A DNA stretch of 63,194 bases, the filler included, from Octopus bimaculoides (lineage: Eukaryota), in NCBI RefSeq assembly GCF_001194135.2. It is 7 parts of 6 records of this genome, joined end to end, with 100 filler letters (N's around TTAATTAATTAA, not from the genome) between each part and the next. Parts side by side here need not be neighbours in the genome. Positions count along the whole stretch, not along the records: positions 22,022 to 46,928 come from NC_068993.1; 6 more parts are not named here. One strand, given 5' to 3'. A program made the position numbers and the translations under genes. Of this stretch, positions 23,107 to 62,721 are shown piece by piece. Within the stretch, counting starts at the first letter, position 1; every line of letters begins with the position of its first letter. Below the pieces are notes generated by a model. The model did no database searches and was not told the origin of the DNA. It saw only the letters and a list, made by a program, of their open reading frames with translations.

Positions 23107-24210
23107 TATTGGGTCAGAGGGGAATGGGATATCTACCTGCATCAACTTGCTATAAAAGCAGGTAGTATATAGAACTCTTAGTGCAAGTTTTGAAACGTGC
23201 AGTTTGATCTTAAGTTATTTTTTCAAAGCTACAACGGAATTGACAAAGGAGCATATTCGACATATTTTGCTTTATGAGTTCAATAAAGGCAAAAATGCAA
23301 TGGAAAGTGTGAGAAATGTTAATGTCGTACATGGTGATTGGATAATAAGCATAAGCTAGGCTCAATGGTGGTTCCAAAAATTCCAAGCTGGAAACTACAG
23401 CCTAGAAGACAAGCCTCATCCTGAAAGATCTGTAGAGCTGTTGAAGAACTAGCAGAGAAGCTTGGATTTGGTTATTCAACCATTCATAGACACCTACATA
23501 CCATCAGAAAAGTCAGAAAACTGGGTCAATGGATTCCTGACAAACTTTCCGAGTCTAATCACATGCAAAGAGTTAATGTGTGCTTTTCTTTGCTGTCATG
23601 TCTCATGAATGAAGCTTTTGGAGTGACTTGTGACGAGAAATGGGTTCTCTATAAAAACGTCAAGCACCAAAGACAGTGGGTAGGGAAAGGAGAAACACCG
23701 GCACCCCAGGCAAAAGAAAGTTTTCACTCAAGTAAGGTGTTATCTATTTGGTGGGATATGAAAGGTTTAGTCCACTTTGATCTTTTAAATTCAAACCAAA
23801 TGATAACAAAGGAGATCTACTGTGAGCAGCTAAAGTCAGTGCGAGAAGAAAAACAACCATTTTTGGTTTCAAGATGAAAGGTGTTCTTCCACCAGAATTA
23901 TGCTTAGCCACATACAGCAAGGATGATATTCCAAAGGCTGGAGCAGTCTGAATGGGAAATGATGCCCCACCTACCATATTCGCCAGACATTGTCCCATCT
24001 GATTATCATTTATTCCATAGTCTTCAAAATCATTTGGATAGAAAAAATATGAATTCTGTTGATATTTTGTCATGGACAAGCGAATTTTGGAAAAGGGGCC
24101 TTGCAAGTCTACCAGAGAGCATTGTAGAAAATGAAGAAGAGTATATTTTAGATTTAAAAAGAACTTTAAGAAGTATAAAAAATCCGCATTATTTATGGGA
24201 TGACCCAATA
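23107..24210 (+). mobile_element. Near full-length decayed mariner (D,D34D type)
   Basis: ELTKEHIRHILLYEFNKG, WIPDKL, VTCDEKWVLYKN, YSPDIVPSDYHLFHSLQN. Right TIR ccgcattatttatgggatgacccaata+TA; left TIR remnant TA+tattgggtca. Stops and frameshifts present. Confidence 0.9.
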
Positions 24211-24849
24211 TATATACTAGCTCAAAAGTCGCCCTATTAGGTGGCTTTTCAGCAAGAATATAGCTTTTAATCTACTAACCTCGAATGGGAAGGTCTGCTA
24301 ACAGATCTCTGGCTTGTTTTCAAGAATTTTTTACAATTGTTTCCTCCAGAATCATCTCACACTGATGATGATATTTGTAGCAAAACATCGCCAAAAATTA
24401 TTGCTGGATTTCACAATTAATTTTGATTATCCCCAAAATTTATTTCCAAGTGATAAAAATTGTTATTGTACAAAAAAATTTTGTTGCAAAAAGTCATGTA
24501 AAAAATCGTCAAAAGCAATTAATTACAGTAATGAAAACTGAATCTAAAATATCAGGATGGCGAGTCCAGATTTGGCCCGGAATGTTTTTAATTTACTCAT
24601 GGAGTTGGCTTGGTTCCAAAATTGTATGATATGTTGGGCTATGGCCTCTATGAGTGAAGTTGAAAAAGTGTGACACACTGACAATTCTCTCTCTCTTTCT
24701 CTCCCTCTCTCTCTCTGTCACCCTCTCTCTCTCTTTCTCACGCATATACACACACACACACTCACTCCCACTCATAAACATGTTAATATGAAGTATATCA
24801 CATGCAATGTGATAGTTCTGTAATTAAAATGTTTAACCCTTATTTTCAG

Positions 24850-24999
24850 AATGTCCTAAGACAGTGACCATTTGCAACCAAAATGTAGTTTGTCCAAATA
24901 ATACAGTGTACAACAAGTGTCAAATACCTTTTCTGAAAAATGCCACACTTACATGCAATGACACTCTACAATGGGATCCTTCTTTTCAGTGTCCAAAAG
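24850..24999 (+). CDS. Membrane-protein gene exon A: Cys-rich ectodomain module 1
   Basis: ccctattttcag / gtaaat; 150 nt, phase 1-1, open: (E)CPKTVTICNQNVVCPNNTVYNKCQIPFLKNATLTCNDTLQWDPSFQCPK; sequons NNT, NAT, NDT. Confidence 0.85.
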
Positions 25000-28416: not shown

Positions 28417-28602
28417 TTAATCAAAGTAAATTTTCTCCAAAAGAACAAGAATGCCCTCACAATGTTTCTGTCTGTGAAAAAAATATTCAACCAAACAAAA
28501 CAGCTGTTGGCACTAAGTTTGAGGAATCACTATTTGGCCATCGTATCCATTTTAAATGTCAAAATAACTTTGAATGGCAATATGATTATCAATGTCCAAA
28601 TG
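28417..28602 (+). CDS. Exon B: Cys-rich ectodomain module 2
   Basis: ttgttttgcttaaatttccag / gtaagt; 186 nt, phase 1-1: (V)NQSKFSPKEQECPHNVSVCEKNIQPNKTAVGTKFEESLFGHRIHFKCQNNFEWQYDYQCPN; aligns with exon A. Confidence 0.9.
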
Positions 28603-29177: not shown

Positions 29178-29294
29178 GTAAAGTATCAAAAGCTAAACGA
29201 AATATAATAGTAATCACCTGCTTAGGAGTATTTGTTCCATTATTATTGGTGTTGCTAGCAATAATATGTTGCTGCAAATCACATACAAAGAAAG
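29178..29294 (+). CDS. Exon C: transmembrane exon
   Basis: gttgtttttattgcag / gtttgt; 117 nt, phase 1-1: (G)KVSKAKRNIIVITCLGVFVPLLLVLLAIICCCKSHTKK. A hydrophobic span of about 22 aa is followed by a Cys cluster and basic stop-transfer residues. Confidence 0.85.
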
Positions 29295-29958
29295 GTTTGT
29301 ATAATATTAGAGCTTAAACTTTCTAATAACATTGTGTTGAGTGCGTCCCAAGTCTAAGAAACATTCTCAATTTCACTTCACATCACATTAACAATTCTTG
29401 TTTCTCTTTACCTTAAAAATACAATAATGAATGCTTTGTGTGTATTGTATGTAACTTACTATCACCGTCTCTGTGCATCGCCAACCAACACCTAAACATT
29501 CCAAATATCCGATCTCCTTCTTAATTCCCAAACCAGCCTCACTTACCATCTTTGTATCTATTAAACTGCCCACTCACTACCTAATCCTAACTACTTAACC
29601 ATATATCTAATACTAAGCCATTCTCCACTGTCTGGAACCTACAAAGGTGGGACCTCTGATTAGGCATAGGTTTCACCAGCTTTTTGTTACTGATCTCTTC
29701 ATACATAATTGTTTCAAGACAGCTAAGAGGGTGATGAAAACTATTCTCTAAGAGATTACATCAAATCTACCAAATGATATGTTTGTAATTGTACGATAGT
29801 ATCACAAGTGAAGAGCGTAGTTTATGATCTACAGAAGAGGCAGCAGCCATAGCCTTTACAACCCGTCTTCTCTAATGCACTTATCTAATTCTGTTTTATA
29901 TTGTTATATCTAATGTACTGTTTGATATTGTTTCTCTTTTCATAAATTTGTTTTTAAG

Positions 29959-30159
29959 GAAGCCCTATCTTACAATATTTTAAGGCTGTAGTAGGGAAAT
30001 GTATCTCATGCAACTGTCCACGTAAAAGAGAGGTCCCAGATGTTACAAATGGGGAGCAAAATGAATTATTTGTGTTGCTAGAGCGCAGCGTTACTCGTGG
30101 TAATGATACTTCAACTGTTGAGGAGCAAAGACAATTATCCTGTACAGATCACATTTCAA
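29959..30159 (+). CDS. Exon D: cytoplasmic cassette 1
   Basis: tttctcttttcataaatttgtttttaag / gtaagt; 201 nt, phase 1-1, open: (G)SPILQYFKAVVGKCISCNCPRKREVPDVTNGEQNELF...RSVTRGNDTSTVEEQRQLSCTDHIS. Confidence 0.8.
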
Positions 30160-30328
30160 GTAAGTATTAAGAAATTGTGAAACATTATCGTACTTCTGGT
30201 TACATAATTGTCAAAGTGGTTAGGTTGCAGAACAAACATGTTCACTGGTGATGTACTGTATATTTCCATGTATAAGACGATCTTTAGATAAGATGAGATT
30301 AAGGTTTGTAAAAAATTTAAGGAATTTG

Positions 30329-30660
30329 TCATCATCATCATCATCATCGTGTAATGTCCGCTTTCCATGCTAGCATGGACAATTTGACTGAGGTGAACCA
30401 GATGGCTGCACCAGGCTCCAATCTGATCTGGAAGAGTTTCTACGGCTGGATGCCCTTCCTAATGCCAACCACTCCGAGAGTGTAGTGGGTGCTTTTACAT
30501 GCCACCGGCACAAGAGCCAGTCAGGCGGTACTGGCAACAGCCACACTGAAATGGTGTTTTTTATGTGCCACCTGAACAGGAGCCAGTCCAGTGGCACTGG
30601 CAATGACCTCACTCAAATATTTTTTCACGTGCCACCGGCACAAGTGCCAGTATGGCGACA
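30329..30660 (-). mobile_element. RTE 3' tail (intronic)
   Basis: (cat)n tail, gatgcccttcct motif and gtgccacc units. Confidence 0.85.
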
Positions 30661-30739
30661 GACGACTGCTAAATTACAAAACCATCTGTGTACAAGCTAG
30701 CTTTTGCATCAAGTGAAATTTATAATTATTTTATACCTA

Positions 30740-31140
30740 TATCAACATGCAACCACCAGCAAAAGAAGAAAATATGAGACTAGTTTCAAATTGAAAGTTA
30801 TAGAAGTAGCCAAGAGTTTAAATAATCGTGCTGCTGCTAGAGCATTCAATGTTACCAAGGAGATGGTACGAGAATGGAGAAAGAATGAGGAAAAATTAAG
30901 ACAAATGCCCAAACAAAAATGTGCAATGAGAAGAGGAAGCACTCGTTGACCAAAGTTGGAAAATGATGTAGCAGAATGGGTACTCCAGCAAAGACAAGAT
31001 GGCTACATTGTAGCACAAAATAAAACAAGATCTTATGCCCTAAAATGGGCTAAATCATATAAAGAAAAAAGTAAGATCTTAAAGCAACAGTAGCCTGGTG
31101 CAATCATTTTATGAGCAGACAAAAACTGGTAATAAGGGAC
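30740..31140 (+). mobile_element. Pogo/Tigger-like transposase N-terminal fragment; probable terminal piece at about 32230-32330
   Basis: KRRKYETSFKLKVIEVAKSLNNRAAARAFNVTKEMVREWRK...R*PKLENDVAEWV (HTH_psq / CENP-B-type HTH pattern). Confidence 0.8.
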
Positions 31141-31254
31141 TGTGTTGAAACAGATATTATTGTATTTCAGGATGGTCATTTTTTTTTTTTTGCCAAATAA
31201 ACACACGCACTATATATTTATTCTTCACTTGTTTATTACTGTTCTTATTTTAAC

Positions 31255-31800
31255 TCATGTTCATTGTCTGGAAATCTTTCATCAAACAGCTGTGACCTCT
31301 TTAAGTACAGAGGCCTATCTTTAGCTATATATTGCTCCTGCTGCTGCCTTACAAGAACTATAGCATTGATGGTGCTTCTCCCTGGCATAAAACCAAACTG
31401 CATCTCATCTAGACTAATTCTCCTCCACATTAGTTGGGCTATGACTCTCTCTGTAACTTTCATCACCAGACCCAACAATATGAGACCTCTGTAATTATTT
31501 CTATCTAAGGCATCACCTTTACTTTTCTAGCAGTTGACTATGGTGCTGCTACACAAGTCATTGGGTATGACTCCTTCGTGAATTACCTGATTTACAATAC
31601 AGGTGACTAAACCATAACCTACACCACCAGATATTTTAAGCATCTCAGCAGTGACTCCTGAAGGGACAGGAGCTTTCCCTGTCTTCATGTCCTTAATTGC
31701 TTTACCAGGGTACTACTGATTCAGGTAGCTGGTCCTTCAATTGGGTCCACATTCATTTTCTACATTCATAATGGCATTTCCAAGCCTCTTTCTTTTCAGA
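31255..31800 (-). mobile_element. RTE RT fragment (intronic)
   Basis: VMKVTERVIAQLM..ISLDEMQFGFMPGRSTINAI matches 44860-44960. Confidence 0.85.
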
Positions 31801-31873
31801 ATCACCTAATGCATGTGCAACAGCATCCATTTCTCTCCTATAATATTTATCTTTTCCTACAATTATTTTCAAG

Positions 31874-32050
31874 ATATTAACAATGAAAATACTTGTGAAG
31901 TAGACCAGCTAAGAGAGCTCGGTGGGCCAGCCAATGAATCTAAGAGAAATAATGACAAAGATAGTGGATACAGTGAAGAAACTCATCAAGATGATGTACA
32001 ACAGGAGAACTGTGGCAATGATACATTGTCGCATACAGCTAACAATATGA
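31874..32050 (+). CDS. Exon E: cytoplasmic cassette 2
   Basis: ttttcctacaattattttcaag / gtaagt; 177 nt, phase 1-1: INNENTCEVDQLRELGGPANESKRNNDKDSGYSEETHQDDVQQENCGNDTLSHTANNM. Confidence 0.9.
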
Positions 32051-32654
32051 GTAAGTATTAAGCAATTGTGAAATATTATCATACTTCTGGTTACACAATT
32101 GTCAAGTGGTTAGGTTGCGGAACAAACATGTGTTCACAAGAGATGTAGATTTAATCTTTTGTATCTGATATATTTCTAGCAAAGCTACATATTACATAGT
32201 AATATGTGAGTCGAGCTGCACAGCAGACAAATATATTGATGAGGCACCTAACCTTGCTTTGATCCTCTAGCCTCGCTTTGATACAGTAGCCTCATTCTGA
32301 GACACTAGCCTCGTTCTGAACTACACTGTAGAAACAGCCTCAGTTCCTGCCAGGCTTTGGTCAAAGACTCATGTCTTCTCTACAGCTCCACATACAATCT
32401 CCCACATGCAACTCACATGTCTATTCACCAACGACACAAAATATATGGTTCGTAAACAAGGATATTTTATCACATACACATTCTCAAAATGACTGTTCTC
32501 ACATATGCATACACACTGTGATACAAATATTATATGTTACTTCTTTCAGTGCAAAAACAAAAATCAAAACTTTCTTTGTATGTAAACACACGTTTTTGTA
32601 TTATACTACATACTTCCACCACAAAAAGTGAACACAGAATAGACAATATATTTC

Positions 32655-32965
32655 ATCATCATCATTGTCGTCGTTTAACGTCCGCTTTCCATGCTAGCAT
32701 GGGTTAGACGATTTGACTGAAGACTGGTGAAACCAGATGGCTACACCAGGCTCCAATCTGATTTGGCAGAGTTTCTACAGCTGGTTGCCCTTCCTAACGT
32801 CATGCCCTTCCTGTCTTATGGTGATTCATACTATTTTTCCATCTAATAACATGCACTTGAATGTCCAGCAAATTAGCCTGGTGCAGCCATCTGGTTCGCC
32901 AGTCCTCAGTCAAATTGCCCAACCCATGCTAGCATGGAAGGCGGACGTTAAACGATGATGATGTA
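32655..32965. mobile_element. Two RTE 3' tails in opposite orientation (about 90-bp inverted repeat)
   Basis: About 32660-32755 (minus) and 32876-32963 (plus) are reverse complements. Confidence 0.9.
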
Positions 32966-33081
32966 TGTATGCAATATGTGTAGGTGTGTGTATGTATATA
33001 CACTTTACCTCTCATTCTAGCCTAATGCAGTTATCTAGTGTTGACTTTATTATATTGTTTTTATTTTCATGTAATTTGAAG

Positions 33082-33243
33082 AAGATGACAGCATGTGTAA
33101 TCATGATGAAAATCCACCAACAGACACCCCTCCCCTGAAGATTAGCAAGACTAAAAGAAGTCTTATGAAATCTTTATCATTAGGTGTTCTTTTGACAGCT
33201 GATTCTTCAAATACATCATTATTGAGTCTGCCTGGCAATATAA
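33082..33243 (+). CDS. Exon F: cytoplasmic cassette 3
   Basis: tttttattttcatgtaatttgaag (NAGNAG, alternative start 33085) / gtaagt; 162 nt, phase 1-1: DDSMCNHDENPPTDTPPLKISKTKRSLMKSLSLGVLLTADSSNTSLLSLPGNI. Confidence 0.85.
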
Positions 33244-33824
33244 GTAAGTATGAAGAATTTGTGAAATATTATCAAAGTTTGTCATAGTTCTCATACAGTT
33301 GTCAAATGGTTAGTTTTCAGAAATGGAATCCAAGCCATTTTCTCGCTATTTTGCCTATCATGTCCAAAACTTTAGATCTTCCACAATTCTTGTAGACATA
33401 ATGAGAGACAGATCTAGAGGAGTTGTGAAGCTGCTAGGGAAGTATCATGGTGGACTTGTGCTGTGTGCAATAGGCTAAATGCAGAGAAGCCTCAGACATG
33501 AAACAAAGTACAAGGTTTTCTTGATTGATAGTAGTAATGGTATGAGTAGAATAAGCATACTTTTGTAGAGAAGTGTGTAGATAAAGTAATCAATATCGTC
33601 AGAGTGAATGATAAGATAATTAAACTTTGATTTATTTTACATAATATGATAGCAACAGTTATCTCCACTTACTCTCCACAATCTAGATATTAGCATATGA
33701 ACTGAAGGTCCTGTTCAATGAAGCCTCATTCTTACTACTTTAGCCACAAATAGCAATGACTTCATCATTTTGGCTAATAACTTCAATAAACATGTTTGGC
33801 AACACCCTAGCAGTTTCCATAACA

Positions 33825-35111: not shown

Positions 35112-35147
35112 ATGAGCCAAGGTGTCATTTATCAATGCCAGTACAAG
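35112..35147 (+). CDS. Exon G: 36-nt microexon
   Basis: cttttattttacag / gtaaat; phase 1-1: EPRCHLSMPVQ. Confidence 0.75.
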
Positions 35148-35199: not shown

Positions 35200-35945
35200 A
35201 AGTGAGCATATTTTTGTTTGTTTGTACATTGACTGCTGAAAGCACTAAATAAAATTGATAATATTTCAGGATTTTCGTCCCATTTAGATTATTTGAAACA
35301 TTTTGCAAATAACTGCACTTATTTTTTAAAAATAGATTGGGTAGTGGGTGGGGTGGGGTGAGTTGGTGGTGTATCGACTCCTATTTCTAGCAATCCATGT
35401 ATTGTCTATTTCACCGTAATGTCTATACATCCTTATAAAAAGCATTGTCTGCTTCTTTGCTTGTACATTGTACATTGATTGCTGAAAACACTAAATATAA
35501 AAAGCAAAGTTTGTTTGTTTGTACGTTGACCACTGGAAATGCAAAATGATATTGATAATATTTCAGGCTTTTCATATCATTACAATTCATTTGATATTCC
35601 GCAGATAACTGCGCACTTATTTTCCAAAACCAGACTGGTAGGAGGGGGACAGTTGGTGATGTATTGGCACCTATTTCTAACAATCTATGTACTGACAATT
35701 TCACTGTAATGTTTATATCGCTGTCCTTATGAAAAGCAAAGTTTGTTTATTTGCACATTGACTGCTGAAAACACTAAATAAAATTAATATTTCAGGTTTA
35801 TCATGTCATTTCAATTAATTTGACCATTCTGCAGATAACTGTGCACTTATTTTATGAAAACGGAATGGATGAGGGTGGAAGCCAAGTTGATGGTGCATAG
35901 GCTTCTATTTCTAGCAATCCACGTACTGTCTATTGCACCATAATA
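35200..35945. repeat. Three tandem intronic units of about 250-270 bp
   Basis: tttgtttg..cattgactgctgaaa.cactaaata..atttcagg..gataactg..cacttattt..ttggtg.tg..ctatttcta.caatc recurs three times. Confidence 0.85.
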
Positions 35946-36557
35946 CTTTTTAGAGAGGGAAAAAATACTCCACCTATCACTCAATCTGCCTCTAACTTTC
36001 TCGAAGGTTATACATTACAGTTATTCTTTTGAAGTTACCACCAGACCTCTGCATTTTCTCTGTCTATATGTCCCTTTCTATGCCTCTGAGAGCATTCTGG
36101 GTGATAGCAGATAAGTAAGGTGTGATAGTAGGCAGGGAAAGATAATGGGAAATGGAAGTGGTTTGGGGTAGGGAAGAAAAGTATCTGGGAAAGGTGGGGG
36201 ATGTAGTATGTGGCTATTCTGCTCTCAGGTGATAGAAAAGTGATGGATGTTTGGGTATGAAATTTGAGGGGCAAAGGTTGACAGTGTGGAACCCCTTATA
36301 TACAAGCATTGCCAAAGTGGTTTTAGGATATCAGTTCTACTGTGGTAGACGAGTCTTTTTAAGAATAGCAAGGTGCCAGTTATTTCAATCCTTTTTCATC
36401 TCTTTTGTAAGGCTCAGCATTTTGAGATCAACCTTCAGCACTTCATTCTGTGTCTTTCTGGGTCTTCCTCTTCCACAAGTTCCAGGAACACAGAAGCATA
36501 ACCTGTATTTTATGCTTTATATAATTTAAACTGTATTTCTATATTTCCCCTTTTCAG

Positions 36558-36587
36558 AACATGGTAGCACAGCAGTGTCAGCTTATG
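36558..36587 (+). CDS. Exon H: 30-nt microexon
   Basis: atttccccttttcag / gtatgt; phase 1-1: HGSTAVSAY. Confidence 0.75.
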
Positions 36588-40463: not shown

Positions 40464-41574
40464 GTATGTATATATTTGTATGTGTTTGTGTGTAGTCATC
40501 ATCCTCATCATCTTTTAATGTCCATCTTCCATGCAGTATGGTTAGTTTGACAGGACCTGAAGAGTCTGAGGATTACTTCATGCTCAAATGCCTGCCTTCA
40601 CATGGTTTCTGTGACTGCCCCCCCCCCCAACCTTTGCCATCCACTTTACAGAGTGTACTAGATACTTTTTTCATGGCACCAAAATTATATTTAGTGAATT
40701 AGTGAATTTGTATCCTTGCTATCGTTATATTCTGAATATTAACATTAAAAAACAAAAGAAACAGAAACTGAGACAAGCCGTTCTACTTTACAAGTCACAT
40801 GACTAAAAAAGACAAAAAACAGTCAACCACTTTTTATCCTGACTGCTTTTCTGCCAGAAGCTACATGACATATATAAACATCGGCATTTTCCCATTTTGT
40901 GAAAGCTGATAAAATCCACAACAATTGCTCTCGAGTAACTATGTCAGACTGCTGTTTCTTGCAAAACGTTCATATAATACATACGGAAAAAAAAATGATA
41001 AAACAAAACATAGGCTCAGATATTAGTGAGATATCAACTCAGAAGAGACAACCATAGACAGCAGTCAATATTAGCCTGTGTTCTTTTTAGCTTAATGACC
41101 CTGCTTTCTGATGCATATTATTTCTGAAGTTCTGTACTCTGCACACATTATGAATTCTCTACAATCAAGAAATCAAGGGCTGACTACTCTTCAAACATTA
41201 TTAGAAAATGTTTGAGAAACAAGAGGAGCCCACAGCTCCCTCAACCATTCAGTTAAATTATTCAAATAGTAATCTTACATTTTCACAATTTAATACTAAA
41301 TCTATTGAATAAGGATCCAGTTTATATATTCATTGAATGCAAACTGGGGAAATGGTACAAGGAAAATCCGTGAAGACAGACTTTTGGTTAAGACCATATT
41401 GATAGTGGAGTGTGGGTGGGGTGGATGTTTGAATATTTGAGGAATGTAGAGTGTTTTACTGTTAAAACTGATCCAAATTATGCTTAGAATCAGTTTTTCG
41501 TGCATCAGGTGTGTGAGAAGTGGAAGGTGACCAGAAACATAGGTCACCCTCATCGAACTTAAATAACCACTTCA

Positions 41575-42330
41575 TCATCATCATCATCATCATCATTTAA
41601 TGTCCACTTTACATGCAGGCATGGGTTGGATGGTTTGACTGAGGACTGCACCAAGCTCCAATATGATCTGGCAAGGTTTCTACAGTTGGATGCGCTTTCT
41701 AACACCGACCACTCTGAGTATGTAGTGGGTGCTTTTCACATGCCACCATCACAGAGCCAGTCAAGCGTTAATAGCAAAGACCATGCTTGAATGATGTTTT
41801 TTACATGCCACCAGCATGGGACCAGTCAGGCAGCACTGTCATTGACCATGTTTGTATGGTGCTTTTTTACGTGCCACCAGCACAGGAACCAGTCTGGTGG
41901 GAGTGACATTGACCACACTCGAATGGTGCTTTTTATGTGCCAGTCAGGCGGTACTGGCATCAGCCACAACAATGATTTCACTTGACTCAACAGGTCTTCT
42001 TAAGCACAGTTTATTGCCCAATGATTGAAGGGTACACTTAAATGGGCTGGTTATACAACACTGGCATAGCCCACAGTTATGGTCTCACTTGGCTTGCCAG
42101 GTCTTCTCAAGCACAACATATCTCCAAAGGTCTCGGCTGCTTGTCATTGCCTCCGTAAGGCCCAATGTTCAAAGGTCATGCTTCACCACCTCATCCCAGG
42201 TCATCCTAGGTCTACCTCTTCCACAGGTTCCCTACACTGTTTGAGTGTGACACTTCTTCACACAGTTGTCCTCATCCATACACAACACATGCCCATACTA
42301 CTGCAATCGTCTCTCTTTCACACCACACCT
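41575..42330 (-). mobile_element. RTE ORF end plus 3'UTR
   Basis: (cat)n tail, unit array, and a minus-strand GRPRMTWDEVVKHDL-type ORF terminus near 42170-42330. Confidence 0.85.
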
Positions 42331-43024
42331 GATGCTTCTCCCCTATCTTTTATTGCCTTGTTTTTTAACATATTTTTTTGAATTATACACTTGATCTACT
42401 TACCTAATTATTTTGTATAATTATTTGTTCTTTTATTCTTTTATTTCAGAAGAAATATACATTTTCATTTATTAAACTACGTAGATAAATTAATTTACAA
42501 GACAACTCAGAATAATGCGACACGAGAAAATTGTTCTGGACTGAACAATAACCTGATTGTTTATATATTAAAAAGCACACAAAAAAACGCTGCCATCTTA
42601 ACTGATTTTTGCACTTCTATTCTAGACCCATTAATGTAAATATCTTCATCTGAATTAAAACCATCATCTGAAAGTTCTTACTTTTGCTGTCTCTTGGTTT
42701 GTATTTTGTATTTGATGTATTTAAAATATTAGATATATTACTTATATATTCGATGTGTCTAATTTATTTATCCACATAATGGTTTCTCTAATCCAGAAGA
42801 TGCTCTCATCTAAATTTGCTAGTTCGCGGTACGCCCGCCCTCCCNNNNNNNNNNNNNNNNNNNNNNNNNNNNNNNNNNNNNNNNNNNNNNNNNNNNNNNN
42901 NNNNNNNNNNNNNNNNNNNNNNNNNNNNNNNNNNNNNNNNNNNNNNNNNNNNNNNNNNNNNNNNNNNNNNNNNNNNNNNNNNNNNNNNNNNNNNNNNNNN
43001 NNNNNNNNNNNNNNNNNNNNNNNN

Positions 43025-46000
43025 TGAACGCTTCTAAAGGCTTTACACCATCCCCACCCCTACTCAGGGTTTATCTCCTATGGAAGGTGGTGATCATATA
43101 GTGCAAAAATCTGATGGTGTAGTGCATGCAGGTTGAATTGAAGGCTATTGTCTGTTTATGAATTCTGCCAAATGCATGCTTTCTTTTCAGGTACATGACA
43201 CTGCTGTCCCCCACCCCAGGGTCTCATGGGCCCACACCTCCCACACCCTCAGGGTTGGTACTCTCAATATCAGCACATTGAAAGGTAGGTCTGGTGAGAT
43301 TGTTGAGTTGCTTGAACGGAGATGTGTCGATATCTGCTGCCTCCAAGAAGTAAGGTGGAGAGGAGGTTCTGCTAGGTTCGTCACAGGCAAAGAACACTGG
43401 TACAAGATTTTCTGGGCAAGGAACACTGACAGGGTCGGGGATGTGGGTATACTTCTTGCAGAGAAATTGGTGGATAAGGTAATCAAGGTAGTCAGAGTGT
43501 GCGACAGAATACTTAGATTAATGCTTCATCATAGGTTAGCAACCATTATCTCGGCCTATGCCCCTCAGTCAGGGTTACCTGGTGGACAAAAAGACCAATT
43601 TTATGGTACCCTCTTGCAGACTACCTCGTTGATGAATGACAGGGACCTTCTCTTTGTGGCTGGTGACTTCAATGGACATATTGGACAACATACAGGGGGC
43701 TTCTGTATTGTACATGGAGGCTATGGTTTTTGTTCCCACAATGAGGAGGGAACCAGGCTGCTGGAGTTCTTATGGTTTGCAATACTAACAACTTCAGGAA
43801 ACCTGCCAGTTACCTAGTCACCTACCATTCTGGCAGACACACTAGCCAAATTGACTACATCCTTGCCAGAAAAAGGGAAAGAGGGCTGCTTATAAATGCC
43901 AAAACCTTTCCAGGCAAAGAATGTACCCCACAACATAAACTGGTAGTTAGTGACTTCAGGATCAGGACTAAGTGGATGCCCAGAAGACGATCAGCATGGA
44001 GGAGAAGAGTCTGGAAGCTTAAAGATCCTGCAAGTGGACAGAAATTTAGAGATATATTACTCGAAGCCATTGATGAAAAAGAAGGGGTTATAGCTTCACG
44101 CAATGTAGAAGACAATTAGAGGTTTCTATGGGACAACCTGCTGAGGGCCACTGACCAGATCTGTGGATGGTGCAAAGTCCCCTCTCAACCCAAAATAACG
44201 TGGTGGTAGAACAATGTTGTTGACAGGGCTATTAGAGAAAAGAAACAGGCTTGGAAGGACTGGAAGAATGGTGGTAGCAGGGAATTGTATCAGACTGCCA
44301 GAAGGGAAGCTAGGAGACAGGTTTGCTTAGCCAGAGTAGAAACAGATAAGAAAAAATTTGCCAATGTTCTGCACTGTGAAGACCAAAGACTTCAGGTATT
44401 TCATGTTGCAAGACAGTGTGTGAGAGAGAATTGTGATGTCGTGGGAAAGAAATGTGTTCGCATGGATGATGGCTCACTTGCACTAAACGAGGCTGCAAAG
44501 AGAGAGGCTTGGAGAGGCCATTATGAAAGGTTGCTCAATAAAGAAAATGAATGGGAGAAAGAGAGTCTGCCAAATGTTGTCCCAACAGAAGGACCAGCTA
44601 TCCGAGATGACAGTACCTTGGTAGATAAAATGATCAAGAGTATGAAGACAGGGAAAGCTCCCAGCCCATCAGGAATCACTGCAGAGATGCTCAAAATATC
44701 TGGCAGTGTTGGCTATAGCCTAGTCACCCGTATAGTTAACCAAGTGATACACAAAGGAGTCATAAACAATGACTGGTGTAGCAGCACCATAGTCAACTGC
44801 TACAAAGGTAAAGATGACGCTTTAGATACAAATAATCACAGAGGTATCAAGTTGTTGGATCAGGTAATGAAGGTCACGGAGAGGGTCATAGCCCAACTAA
44901 TTAGGGAGAGAGTCAGTTTAGATGAGATATAGTTTGGGTTCGTGCAGGGAAAAGCACTGCTGATGCTATATTTCTGGTAAGACAGCTGCAGGAGAAATAC
45001 CTAGCCAAAAATAAACCTCTGTACCTGGCTTTTGTTGACATGGAGAAAGCCTTTGACAGGGTCCCCCAATCCCTTATCTGGTGGTCAATAAGGAAACTAG
45101 GGATAGATGAATGGTTAGTGAGAGCTGTGTGAGCCATGTACAGGGGCGCTGTCAGTAAGGTAAGGGTTGGCAACGAATACAGTGAAGAATTCCAGGTAGA
45201 GGTAGGGGTCCACCAAGGTTCAGTTCTCAGCCCCCTCTTATTTATCATAGTCTCCAGGCAATAACAGAGGAATTCAAGACAGGATGCCCCTGGGAGCTCC
45301 TCTATGCTGACGACCTTGCTCTAATTGCTGAGTCACTATCAGATCTAGAGGAGAAGTTTCAGGTGTGGAAGGAAGGATTCGAATCGAAGGGCCTTAGAGT
45401 CAACCTAGCTAAAACCAAAGTCCTAATAAGTAGGAAGGTTGACAAACCACAAATCCCTTCAGGTAGATGGCCCTGCTCGATCTGTAGAAAAGGCATAGGT
45501 AGAAACTCTATAAGATGCACCCAGTGTAAGCTATGGACACATAAGAGGTGTAGCAATATCAAAGGAAGGTTAACTGGGAAGATAGTTTTTGTATGTGGCA
45601 GATGCTCAGGAGCAATAAACACTGAAAATGTGCAGAGAACAACTAGAAGTAGTTGATAGCTTTCTTTACCTAGGTGACCAAGTCAGTAGTGGGGGAGGGT
45701 GCACTGAAAGTGTAGCTGCTAGAATAAGAATAGCCTGAGCAAAGTTCAGAGAGCTCTTACCTCTGCTGGTGACAAAGGGCCTCTCACTCAGAGTAAAAGG
45801 TAGACTGTATGATGCATGTGTACGAACAGCCATGCTACATGGCAGTGAAACATGGACCGTGACTGCTGAGGACATGTGTAAGCTTGCAAGGAACGAAGCC
45901 AGTATGCTCCGCTGGATGTGTAATGTCAATGTGCATATTCAAGAGAAAAGTTGGACCTAAGAAGCATCAGATGTGGTGTGCAAGAGAGACAACTGCGCTG

Positions 46001-62010: not shown

Positions 62011-62721
62011 TTTTTTTAATGATAATGATAATAATAACAGCTACGACATCACAATAAATGTAACACAGTGTTAGTAGTATTTTGTTATTCATGTAACACA
62101 ACAACAGTAACTGAGTCACAGTAATACAATAATTACATAGTAAGAATAACAATTTCATAACAACACAATAACAATAACAATATGGTAATAATATCCACAG
62201 AATTACAGAATAACAGCAAATCCACATCACGATCAAAGAATCCACACAAGAAAACCGTGTTTCAAAATCGTTATCTCATCCCATCATCTCCGATATCTCC
62301 TTCGTCATCATCATCATCATTAGCACCGACAGCAGCAGCAACATAAAAGAGAGAAAAAAAACGTGCAGCAACAGCAGCGTCAATGGCAGCAGCATTTACC
62401 GGCAGCAGTAGCAGTCGTGCTAACACGCGCACACGTGAACATTTTTACACATGAAGACAGCAGAGTCATACATAGACCCGATCACACAAACCCACATTAA
62501 ATTTCACATACGGTATATATATACATACGCAAAAAAAGGGACAAGGAAAGCTGGAGAGATAGAGTCGGTGGGGTGGGCGAATGTCCCACATATTTGTATT
62601 CCTAACACAAAATTGCACTGAAATGTACACACACACACATCACACATGCACAACCATATATTGGCAGCGCACAAACACAAACCGCGCACGAAGTCCTTAA
62701 ACGTGTGTGTGCATTAAACAA

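Follow-up and report, generated by a model that had tools for sequence, protein, structure and literature searches.

Exons diverge faster than their own introns in an octopus membrane-protein gene with tandemly duplicated cytoplasmic-tail exons

Exons D, E and F, part of an uncharacterised membrane-protein gene of octopus, are tandem duplicates with coding sequences that have become almost unrecognisable as copies of each other, whereas the stretches of intron that begin at their donor sites are still clearly alike. This within-genome pattern, in which paralogous introns resemble each other more than paralogous exons do, is mirrored between species. We consider it probable that the three are co-included tail exons, each combining a fast exon with a slow intron block, that D and E have been partly homogenised by gene conversion and that no special RNA device is at work; the apparent excess of intron over exon conservation comes from exons that change fast and from a stretch following the donor that changes slowly. 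The gene lies in a window of 63,194 nucleotides of Octopus bimaculoides DNA (filler included), and all positions given here count along that window unless another locus is named.

Results

Gene model and product

Six exons bounded by AG and GT were recognised (A to F), later extended to eight with G and H; all are of phase 1-1 with no other frame open, and the chance of finding an open frame after shuffling is 0.006-0.035 per exon. Exons D, E and F are preceded by AG and followed by GTAAGT, have only the phase-1 frame open and are multiples of 3 in length; both the lengths of 201, 177 and 162 nt and the coordinates assigned to them in a preliminary description of this DNA hold. The encoded protein has an ectodomain of two Cys-rich modules, one transmembrane helix and a tail built from D, E and F. 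The exons are as follows.

24850-24999, plus strand: exon A, 150 nt, phase 1-1, a splice-bounded open reading frame; Cys-rich ectodomain module with N-glycosylation sequons
28417-28602, plus strand: exon B, 186 nt, phase 1-1; second Cys-rich ectodomain module
29178-29294, plus strand: exon C, 117 nt, phase 1-1; transmembrane helix (NIIVITCLGVFVPLLLVLLAIICCC), then the basic stretch KSHTKK; orthologous exon located
29959-30159, plus strand: exon D, 201 nt, phase 1-1; first cytoplasmic-tail exon; orthologue at 62342-62545 of locus L001
31874-32050, plus strand: exon E, 177 nt, phase 1-1; second tail exon; orthologue at 67439-67624 of locus L001
33082-33243, plus strand: exon F, 162 nt, phase 1-1; third tail exon; orthologue at 72389-72562 of locus L001
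35112-35147, plus strand: exon G, 36 nt, phase 1-1; tail exon after F (DEPRCHLSMPVQ), located by tblastn with the O. vulgaris protein and splice-site reading
36557-36586, plus strand: exon H, 30 nt; further tail exon (EHGSTAVSAY), located in the same way

Exon A is paralogous to exon B (BLASTP E=4e-7) and shares about 76-80% amino acid identity with its O. vulgaris orthologue, the value varying with the span aligned, and exon G has 29 of its 36 nt in common with O. vulgaris. Pfam searches with the model protein and with its orthologues returned no family, and the tail carries no Pfam domain. Two candidates were rejected: a B-like tblastn match at 41509-41631, discarded as an exon because it is located inside a SINE, and a composite terminal exon, in which read-through of the donor would lead in D and E to a peptide ending in SKY and a stop, since neither the D nor the E donor has a poly(A) signal within 700 nt.

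Orthologues were retrieved by an exhaustive search with a profile of exons A and B, namely CAI9732129-31 in O. vulgaris and LOC115218344 and XP_036364319 in O. sinensis, and the orthologous loci (L001 and L002), which are colinear with that of O. bimaculoides, are the basis of our rate estimates. Word-index protein searches, one using D+E+F and the other A-D as query, gave no match and no O. bimaculoides counterpart of the gene, and missed the orthologues as well; these misses are false negatives, because the orthologues sit in the collection searched and share long exact words with the queries. In the orthologues exons D, E and F measure 204, 186 and 174 nt, and they stand in series in each of the four products annotated in O. 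vulgaris and O. sinensis, among which no isoform skips any of the three. As every annotated orthologous isoform has D+E+F, the annotation gives no support to alternative or mutually exclusive use, nor to the term cassettes, under which the exons had initially been described. An adjoining paralogue has a tail of four tandem 1,911-nt exon-plus-intron units. The gene encodes an octopod-specific single-pass membrane protein belonging to a tandemly arrayed, lineage-specific family.

Homology among the duplicated units

The elements flanking exons D, E and F in O. bimaculoides are these.

29839-29958, plus strand: acceptor flank of D, with homology to those of E and F; CTAAT motif resembling a branch point; 104-nt AG-free zone
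30160-30250, plus strand: intron block D, conserved; covers ~85-90 nt from the GTAAGTAT donor into intron D-E
30325-31755, no strand assigned: transposon filling of intron D-E, with a SINE, an HTH fragment of pogo/Brinker type (30704-30946) and, on the minus strand, an RT-like fragment
31754-31873, plus strand: acceptor flank of E, homologous to the other acceptor flanks
32051-32142, plus strand: intron block E, sharing 94% identity with block D
32962-33081, plus strand: acceptor flank of F, homologous to the other acceptor flanks
33244-33330, plus strand: intron block F, the third and more diverged copy

The preliminary description had counted about 75 matches in 81 nt between the introns downstream of D and E and had recognised a third copy behind F, and both observations are borne out: the donor-side blocks of D and E are identical at 78 of 83 positions (94%; z=25 versus shuffles), and block F matches D or E at 61 of 75 (81%; z about 12-13), identity decreasing to about 72-74% when the alignment is made to include the 3' end. 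With up to 3 mismatches allowed, a 30-nt block pattern matched the three donor sites only, where 0 matches were expected, and a chance origin of the block similarity is excluded. Between D and E there is a step at the donor site, with 13 of the last 22 exon nt (originally put at about 12) versus 21 of the first 22 intron nt being the same. Nucleotide alignments of the exon bodies are at chance level (z=2.9 for D-E, z<0 for D-F and E-F), as are the first halves of exons D and E, and BLASTP among the bodies of D, E and F detected no similarity. The sole motif shared by exons is RGNDT..LS / CGNDTLS in the tail of D and E, so the earlier remark that only GNDT-LS is visibly common was accurate.

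The donor-side homology ends between about +85 and +100 of the intron. A weaker homology extends over about 120 nt on the acceptor side, including a common CCTAATGCA (z 3.4-3.8 for D-E and D-F), and beyond the flanks the homology between units stops because transposons fill intron D-E. The three exons are adjacent, of the same phase and of frame-keeping lengths, with homology detectable between the copies, as is characteristic of tandem exon duplication. The two sides of the unit group discordantly, the acceptor flank of D going with that of F and its donor flank with that of E. Furthermore, only 4-5 substitutions separate the E block of O. bimaculoides from the D block of either species, about as few as the 3 by which the two orthologous D blocks differ. 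On the strength of these rates and of the discordant similarity, the extra resemblance of D and E is best read as a putative gene-conversion tract.

Divergence between species

Compared with the O. vulgaris locus, the introns show 720 mismatches in 8664 positions (8.3%), a reference of about 8.6 kb that includes transposon remnants and is uniform, with 87-95% identity per segment. Each of the exons A to F exceeds this rate (13.3%, 13.4%, 23.4%, 18.9%, 16.4% and 22.8%, respectively; p from 0.036 to 2e-8), with an overall exon divergence of 17.7% (p=8e-19 versus introns); these figures represent one independent species comparison, since the O. vulgaris and O. sinensis loci share 99-100% identity. 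At the non-degenerate sites of D, E and F there are 70 changes in 327 (21.4%), 2.6 times the intron rate (p=8e-13 versus introns), and four-fold sites, with 10 in 70 (14%, about 1.7 times the introns; p=0.08), fall between the intron and exon rates, so that part of the excess could be due to an exon-specific mutation bias or to weak intron constraint. Reading frames and lengths divisible by 3 are kept in all three species, in-frame indels being frequent.

The NG86 estimates of dN/dS were 1.06 for D, 2.27 for E and 0.80 for F, with pooled values of 1.10 for D+E+F and 0.49 for A+B+C, and neither the pooled D, E and F (Fisher p=0.79) nor E (p=0.30) differs significantly from 1. Among the paralogous exons dN/dS is about 0.33 in the only alignable stretch, where silent sites are saturated. 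It had been proposed that the exons outpace the adjacent introns under diversifying selection, with comparison of orthologues to neutral expectation as the check. The difference in pace stands, with 16-23% in D, E and F versus 8.3%, far above the introns; as to its cause, positive selection on the three exons is plausible but unproven, their divergence being not significantly above the silent-site rate.

Divergence was lower in intron blocks D and F. They are each identical to their O. vulgaris counterparts at 82 of 85 positions, and their joint 6 mismatches in 170 (3.5%) amount to about 0.4 times the intron rate (p=0.01-0.02 versus introns; p=0.007 versus the first 85 nt of other introns, which diverge by 10.2%). 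The acceptor flanks diverge by 7.6%, similar to ordinary intron. In O. vulgaris and O. sinensis the first 19 nt and the far end of the E block remain and the rest is lost, transposons having broken up most of the block in the vulgaris lineage, yet the annotated product retains exon E. Given this loss with exon E retained, the constraint on the block is apparently mild and the block itself would not be indispensable.

Discussion

The history that we favour would start with a short unit, an exon with about 120 nt of flank on its acceptor side and about 85-100 nt on its donor side, which was tandemly duplicated long ago, transposons filling the introns between units afterwards. All coding exons, and the tail exons most, gain substitutions as well as in-frame indels about 2-2.8 times as fast as the introns of the gene, with dN/dS around 1, and the first ~85 nt past the donor sites of D and F evolve at about 0.4 times that intron rate. 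The exon tail and block of D and E would have been homogenised once by gene conversion, shortly before the split between O. bimaculoides and the O. vulgaris lineage. We infer that the fast exon rate may reflect diversifying selection and not a total lack of constraint, and that the slow block may enhance splicing from its place next to the donor, a help where the exon itself cannot keep a constant sequence.

The tail could instead be unconstrained, D, E and F drifting neutrally as disordered sequence, with no positive selection, next to introns that are weakly constrained or slower-mutating. The pooled dN/dS indistinguishable from 1, four-fold sites that differ at about 1.7 times the intron value, which would put omega at about 1.3-1.5, the frequent in-frame indels and a tail devoid of Pfam domains all agree with such drift. 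However, constraint throughout 8.6 kb of intron, transposon remnants included, at a uniform 87-95% identity is hard to credit, and neither the 2.6-fold rate at non-degenerate sites, nor the position of even the Cys-rich exons A and B above the intron rate, nor the preservation of frames and multiples of 3 in all three species would be expected of it; we therefore hold neutral drift to be a real but minority possibility. Much less credible is a choice among D, E and F by competition of the three blocks for pairing with one docking site, as in Dscam, 14-3-3zeta and ATE1. A conserved intronic element does adjoin each duplicated exon, and tandem duplication is known to create competing pairing arms (PMC6071210). 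There is also a perfect complement of 13-14 nt, TGATAATATTTCA, at 35255 and 35552, but it sits in a tandem repeat (nhmmer E=0.8-1.8). Searches for a docking site by ungapped helices, RNAduplex and opposite-strand nhmmer stayed at chance level, and pairing of the blocks with the left intron or with 2.7 kb of right intron gave z from -0.06 to -1.5 in eight of nine block-target pairs (dinucleotide shuffles), z=-2.5 being reached only by block F versus its immediately adjoining sequence, with no consistent excess. The unequal exon lengths (162-201 nt), the loss of the E copy in O. vulgaris and O. sinensis and, as far as annotation goes, the presence of D, E and F together in all four orthologous products likewise argue against such a choice, which we deem very improbable.

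Recoding editing is common in octopus, and a block that begins exactly at the donor site invites the thought that it is an RNA in itself (a tailed mirtron or a snoRNA) or that it pairs with the exon as the intronic strand of a duplex edited by ADAR. This is hardly tenable in view of folding z-scores of +1.3, -0.8 and -0.8 for the blocks and of -0.2, +0.1 and -2.2 for exon plus block, which reveal no stable fold, and of a consensus structure of -4.5 kcal/mol with no compensatory pair. Moreover, Rfam held no match below E=2.8, exon-block duplexes are no better than shuffles and the A/G excess among exon substitutions is not significant (p=0.18). The preliminary description had offered a constrained splicing or editing element in the intron as the alternative to selection; what survives of it is the slow pace of the D and F blocks (p about 0.01), whereas editing and long-range structure find no support and the E block is mostly lost. 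It had also asked whether the block is a piece of a dispersed repeat, inserted three times beside exons, and the introns are indeed crowded with SINEs and other transposons. Yet in every copy the first nucleotide is the donor G, homology extends to the acceptor flanks and to the exon tail of D and E, nhmmer on the 25-kb piece and the 88-, 63- and 93-kb octopus loci (about 270 kb) found only the three donor sites and the orthologous positions, and a pattern scan of metagenome contigs was empty, making repeat insertion the least probable of the explanations weighed here.

Accelerated evolution, with introns more conserved than exons, is a feature of venom and recognition genes such as those for snake venom-gland phospholipase A2 isozymes and conotoxins. 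The octopus gene resembles them in a gene-wide excess of exon over intron divergence, in which silent and replacement exon sites are both above the intron rate, in a dN/dS at or above 1 and in its membership of a tandemly arrayed, lineage-specific family. It departs from them in that its product is a single-pass membrane protein with the cytoplasmic tail as its fastest part, not a secreted toxin, and in that dN/dS is not significantly >1 between the two lineages compared.

In a survey of tandem exon duplications, intron similarity grows with exon similarity, and conservation is higher in exons than in introns (Ivanov & Pervouchine 2018, PMC6071210; review PMC9013439). The octopus exons share with these duplications the copying of the exon along with part of the adjacent intron and the arrangement in adjacent, same-phase copies with a common intronic motif, but here introns beat exons in conservation and the annotation bears no sign of mutual exclusivity. 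ISRE1 and ISRE2 of SCN-alpha exon 5a/5b, a complementary pair with a verified hairpin conserved from human to shark (PMC12772994), are comparable as conserved elements lying a few nt downstream of a duplicated exon and found by comparing paralogues; unlike them, the octopus block has neither partner nor stable structure among those searched for, and its constraint is mild. Co-inclusion of D, E and F beside slow blocks would provide a worked case of a conserved intron block next to duplicated exons that is not a docking or selector device.

A broader proposal, which we regard as rather unlikely in its entirety, would be that of an octopod-specific family of receptor-like membrane proteins in which diversifying selection acts on the whole gene, cytoplasmic tail included, the tail growing by tandem exon duplication and splice recognition having moved to a strong donor and an intronic enhancer of ~85 nt, copied with each exon, because the exons cannot stay constant. 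Genes with exons that outpace their own introns are few, and since they usually serve recognition, immunity, reproduction or venom, the octopus gene, like its neighbours in the tandem array, is a good candidate for a rapidly adapting surface molecule of cephalopods.

Structure and annotation of the tail exons

The three consecutive, tandem-duplicated exons D, E and F each follow an acceptor rich in pyrimidines, end at a GTAAGTAT donor and are open in one frame only (two bases at the start, one at the end), with a chance of 0.007-0.022 per exon of staying open in that frame after shuffling. Exons A, B and C, 5' of D, are all phase 1-1; given Cys-rich A and B and the transmembrane helix in C, the product is a type I membrane protein whose cytoplasmic tail comes from D, E and F.

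Exons of the gene
24850-24999, exon A: Cys-rich module with N-glycosylation sequons, paralogous to B
28417-28602, exon B: Cys-rich module with N-glycosylation sequons, paralogous to A
29178-29294, exon C: transmembrane helix, then basic residues
29959-30159, exon D: 201 nt
31874-32050, exon E: 177 nt
33082-33243, exon F: 162 nt
35112-35147, exon G: next after F
36557-36586, exon H: next after G

Exhaustive search with a profile of exons A and B recovered orthologues in O. vulgaris (CAI9732129-31) and O. sinensis (XP_036364319, LOC115218344), together with paralogues, among them the O. vulgaris gene next door and a protein of Argonauta. Word-index protein searches with the window exons gave no match, a false negative since the orthologues are present in the same collection; the queries and the missed proteins have exact long words in common (e.g. 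NINNENTCE, LTCNDTLQW, ECPHNVSVC). Pfam assigned no family to any of the gene's proteins, paralogues included. All four annotated orthologous products read ...D-E-F-DEPKCRLSIPVQ-EHGSTAVSAY... with nothing omitted; their differences are confined to the N terminus and to minor details at junctions. On present annotation the exons, called cassettes in the preliminary description, are thus used together and are neither alternative nor mutually exclusive. The O. sinensis product has one more alanine where E joins F (TANNIADDSICNH, against TANNIDDSIYNH in the O. vulgaris products) and its segment 5' of exon B is longer, differences that point to alternative acceptor choice or to annotation.

Several further features of these exons were recorded. 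Long AG-free zones precede the acceptors of D (29854-29958, 104 nt), E (31826-31873, 48 nt) and F (33041-33081, 41 nt), whose flanks have in common CCTAATGCA, with a branch-point-like CTAAT, at -84, -65 and -57; this combination suggests distant branch points. In-frame read-through past the donor would give SKY-stop after D (30160-30171) and E (32051-32062), and SKYEEFVKYYQSLS-stop with two YxxPhi-like motifs after F (33244-33288). No poly(A) signals were found near the D or E donors; the two 3' of F (+376 and +542) equal background density. Residues KISKTKRSLMKSLSLGVLL of exon F (33138-33194) resemble the start of exon C, KVSKAKRNIIVITCLGVFV (29180-29236; tblastn E=0.11), with different codons used, probably by chance.

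Paralogous similarity steps at the donor site

The arrangement originally reported holds in its coordinates and its donor-side homology: over the first ~85 intron nt (hereafter the block), D and E match at 78/83 positions (z=25), and D-F and E-F at 61/75 each (z about 12-13), with exon bodies at chance level except where D and E end (RGNDT..LS / CGNDTLS). Identity per 10-nt bin is 5, 6 and 5 of 10 across the last 30 exon nt and 10, 9, 9, 9 and 9 across the first 50 intron nt, which places a step at the donor site. The ~120 nt 5' of each acceptor are weakly homologous among copies, and no similarity was found past about +100 nt of the introns; the original duplicated unit was therefore short, comprising acceptor flank, exon and donor flank.

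Exons diverge faster than introns between species

The O. vulgaris and O. sinensis loci (L001 and L002) are colinear with the window and 99-100% identical to one another, so that they amount effectively to one species comparison.

Mismatches between the window and O. vulgaris (p against intron)
aligned intron, reference class: 720/8664, 8.3%, K=0.088
exon A: 13.3%, p=0.036
exon B: 13.4%, p=0.022
exon C: 23.4%, p=1e-6
exon D: 18.9%, p=2e-6
exon E: 16.4%, p=5e-4
exon F: 22.8%, p=2e-8
non-degenerate sites, D+E+F: 70/327, 21.4%, p=8e-13
non-degenerate sites, A+B+C: 13.3%, p=0.006
four-fold sites, all exons: 10/70, 14%, p=0.08

Tested against this neutral reference, the central claim that exons evolve faster than adjacent introns is borne out, their rate being ~2-2.8 times higher; exon G is also fast, with 7/36 bases differing. 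Exon length differences between species are multiples of three and every frame stays open. The diversifying selection proposed as the cause fares less clearly: the exons are indeed the fast part, but Nei-Gojobori dN/dS (D 1.06, E 2.27, F 0.80; D+E+F pooled 1.10; A+B+C 0.49) is significantly above 1 for no exon, nor pooled, between the window and O. vulgaris. Only 13 paralogous codons of D and E can be aligned, and with silent sites saturated (pS 0.56) and dN/dS about 0.33 this comparison alone gives no sign of positive selection. With two lineages compared, fast exons would be compatible either with positive selection or with exons free of constraint alongside introns that change slowly.

Constraint on the intron blocks

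Blocks D and F both match their O. vulgaris orthologue at 82/85 positions. Pooled, the two have 6/170 mismatches, a rate 0.42 times that of introns (p=0.01-0.02) and also below that of the first 85 nt of the gene's other introns (10.2%, p=0.007), the sign of a real, mild constraint. Of the E block, O. vulgaris and O. sinensis retain only the first 19 nt, with the C at position 13 that is specific to E; the stretch just past the ~92-nt block is also kept and is still similar to what follows the D block. About 76 nt in the middle have been replaced by about 1.86 kb of lineage-specific insertions (L001 67644-69514; L002 34446-36342): a foldback element with inverted arms of ~350 nt and a tRNA-derived SINE in several copies, 89-95% identical. 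Exon E is present in all annotated products despite this loss, and the block is therefore not indispensable. The constrained intron element initially offered as an alternative finds some support in D and F.

As to its nature, a dispersed repeat is contradicted by the lack of further copies in the octopus sequence scanned, about 270 kb, and in metagenome contigs. The D, E and F blocks revealed no stable fold or compensatory pairs, no Rfam match, no coding frame common to the copies on either strand and no consistent excess of complementarity to flanking introns over shuffles, the sole outlier being block F against its own adjoining sequence (z=-2.5). Common to all copies are the complete U1-complementary GTAAGTAT, two TTGTSAA motifs and TGGTTAG. 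Our working idea is a putative donor-proximal splicing enhancer, which would suit exons too unstable in sequence to carry enhancers themselves.

Sequence setting

The piece at 22022-46928 is AT-rich and crowded with SINEs and other transposon remnants, and beyond their flanks the D-E and E-F introns are mostly transposon sequence.

Mobile elements and gap
23229-24240, mariner transposase remnant (Pfam Transposase_1)
30704-30946, pogo/Brinker-type HTH fragment
43158-45656, LINE-like element: endonuclease ORF (43158-43817; identity 82% with a protein of Octopus bimaculoides and 60% with one of O. sinensis) and PHD/C1-like finger ORF
~42840-43030, run of N, assembly gap

Intron E-F holds an inverted pair of SINE fragments (32663-32731 and 32895-32963; 87% complementary, 163 nt apart) that could form long double-stranded RNA in the pre-mRNA. 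Just 3' of exon G, 35213-35950 comprises three tandem copies of a ~230-297-nt unit, two of them with TGATAATATTTCA, whose sequence is perfectly complementary over 13-14 nt to blocks E and F; such complements at 35255 and 35552 were rejected as candidates, lying within the tandem repeat and at chance level.

Origin of the D-E likeness

Between the window E block and the D block of either species there are 4-5 substitutions, near the 3 differences between orthologous D blocks, so that the two blocks must have been almost the same when the species split. Yet exon D, and likewise exon E, can be recognised from one species to the other, and D and E do not resemble each other. With the rates measured (relative to introns, 0.42x for the block and about 2.3x for exons), duplication of the whole unit at that age would leave D-E exon identity of about 70% along the full length, against the observed 67% over only the last 40-60 nt, with first halves at chance. 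Moreover, D groups with F in acceptor flanks (74% identity) and with E in donor flanks. The simplest reading would be an old triplication of the unit, giving D, E and F, followed by gene conversion between D and E along a tract that spans the end of the exon and some 100 nt of intron; conversion probably accounts for part of what D and E share. The figures for F (block 72-81% identity, acceptor flanks 60-74%, exon unalignable) would fit old duplication combined with the rate contrast.

Relation to known systems

Tandem exon duplications that include part of the neighbouring intron are well documented, and in a published survey intron similarity tracks exon similarity, the exons being the better conserved part (PMC6071210), an order reversed in D, E and F. 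In SCN-alpha genes, paralogue-shared intronic elements adjoining duplicated exons form a verified hairpin (PMC12772994), unlike our blocks, which lack a stable fold. The opposite pattern to D/E/F occurs next door, in the tail of the O. vulgaris paralogue CAI9732128.1 (OX597826.1, L003 65117-72760), which consists of four 1,911-nt units in tandem; every unit contains an exon of ~93 nt that encodes GQDPENGIPLRPLPNGNAGGDAENNEGNDIP. Units 1-3 have identical exons and differing introns (6%, units 1 vs 2, p=0.004). Units 2 and 3 are near-identical throughout, which could reflect very recent duplication or an assembly artefact.

In snake venom phospholipase A2 genes and conotoxins, exons, silent sites included, diverge faster than introns, and the gene-wide pattern found here, with exons and silent sites above introns, is the same. 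We file the D/E/F case among known kinds rather than as a new mechanism.
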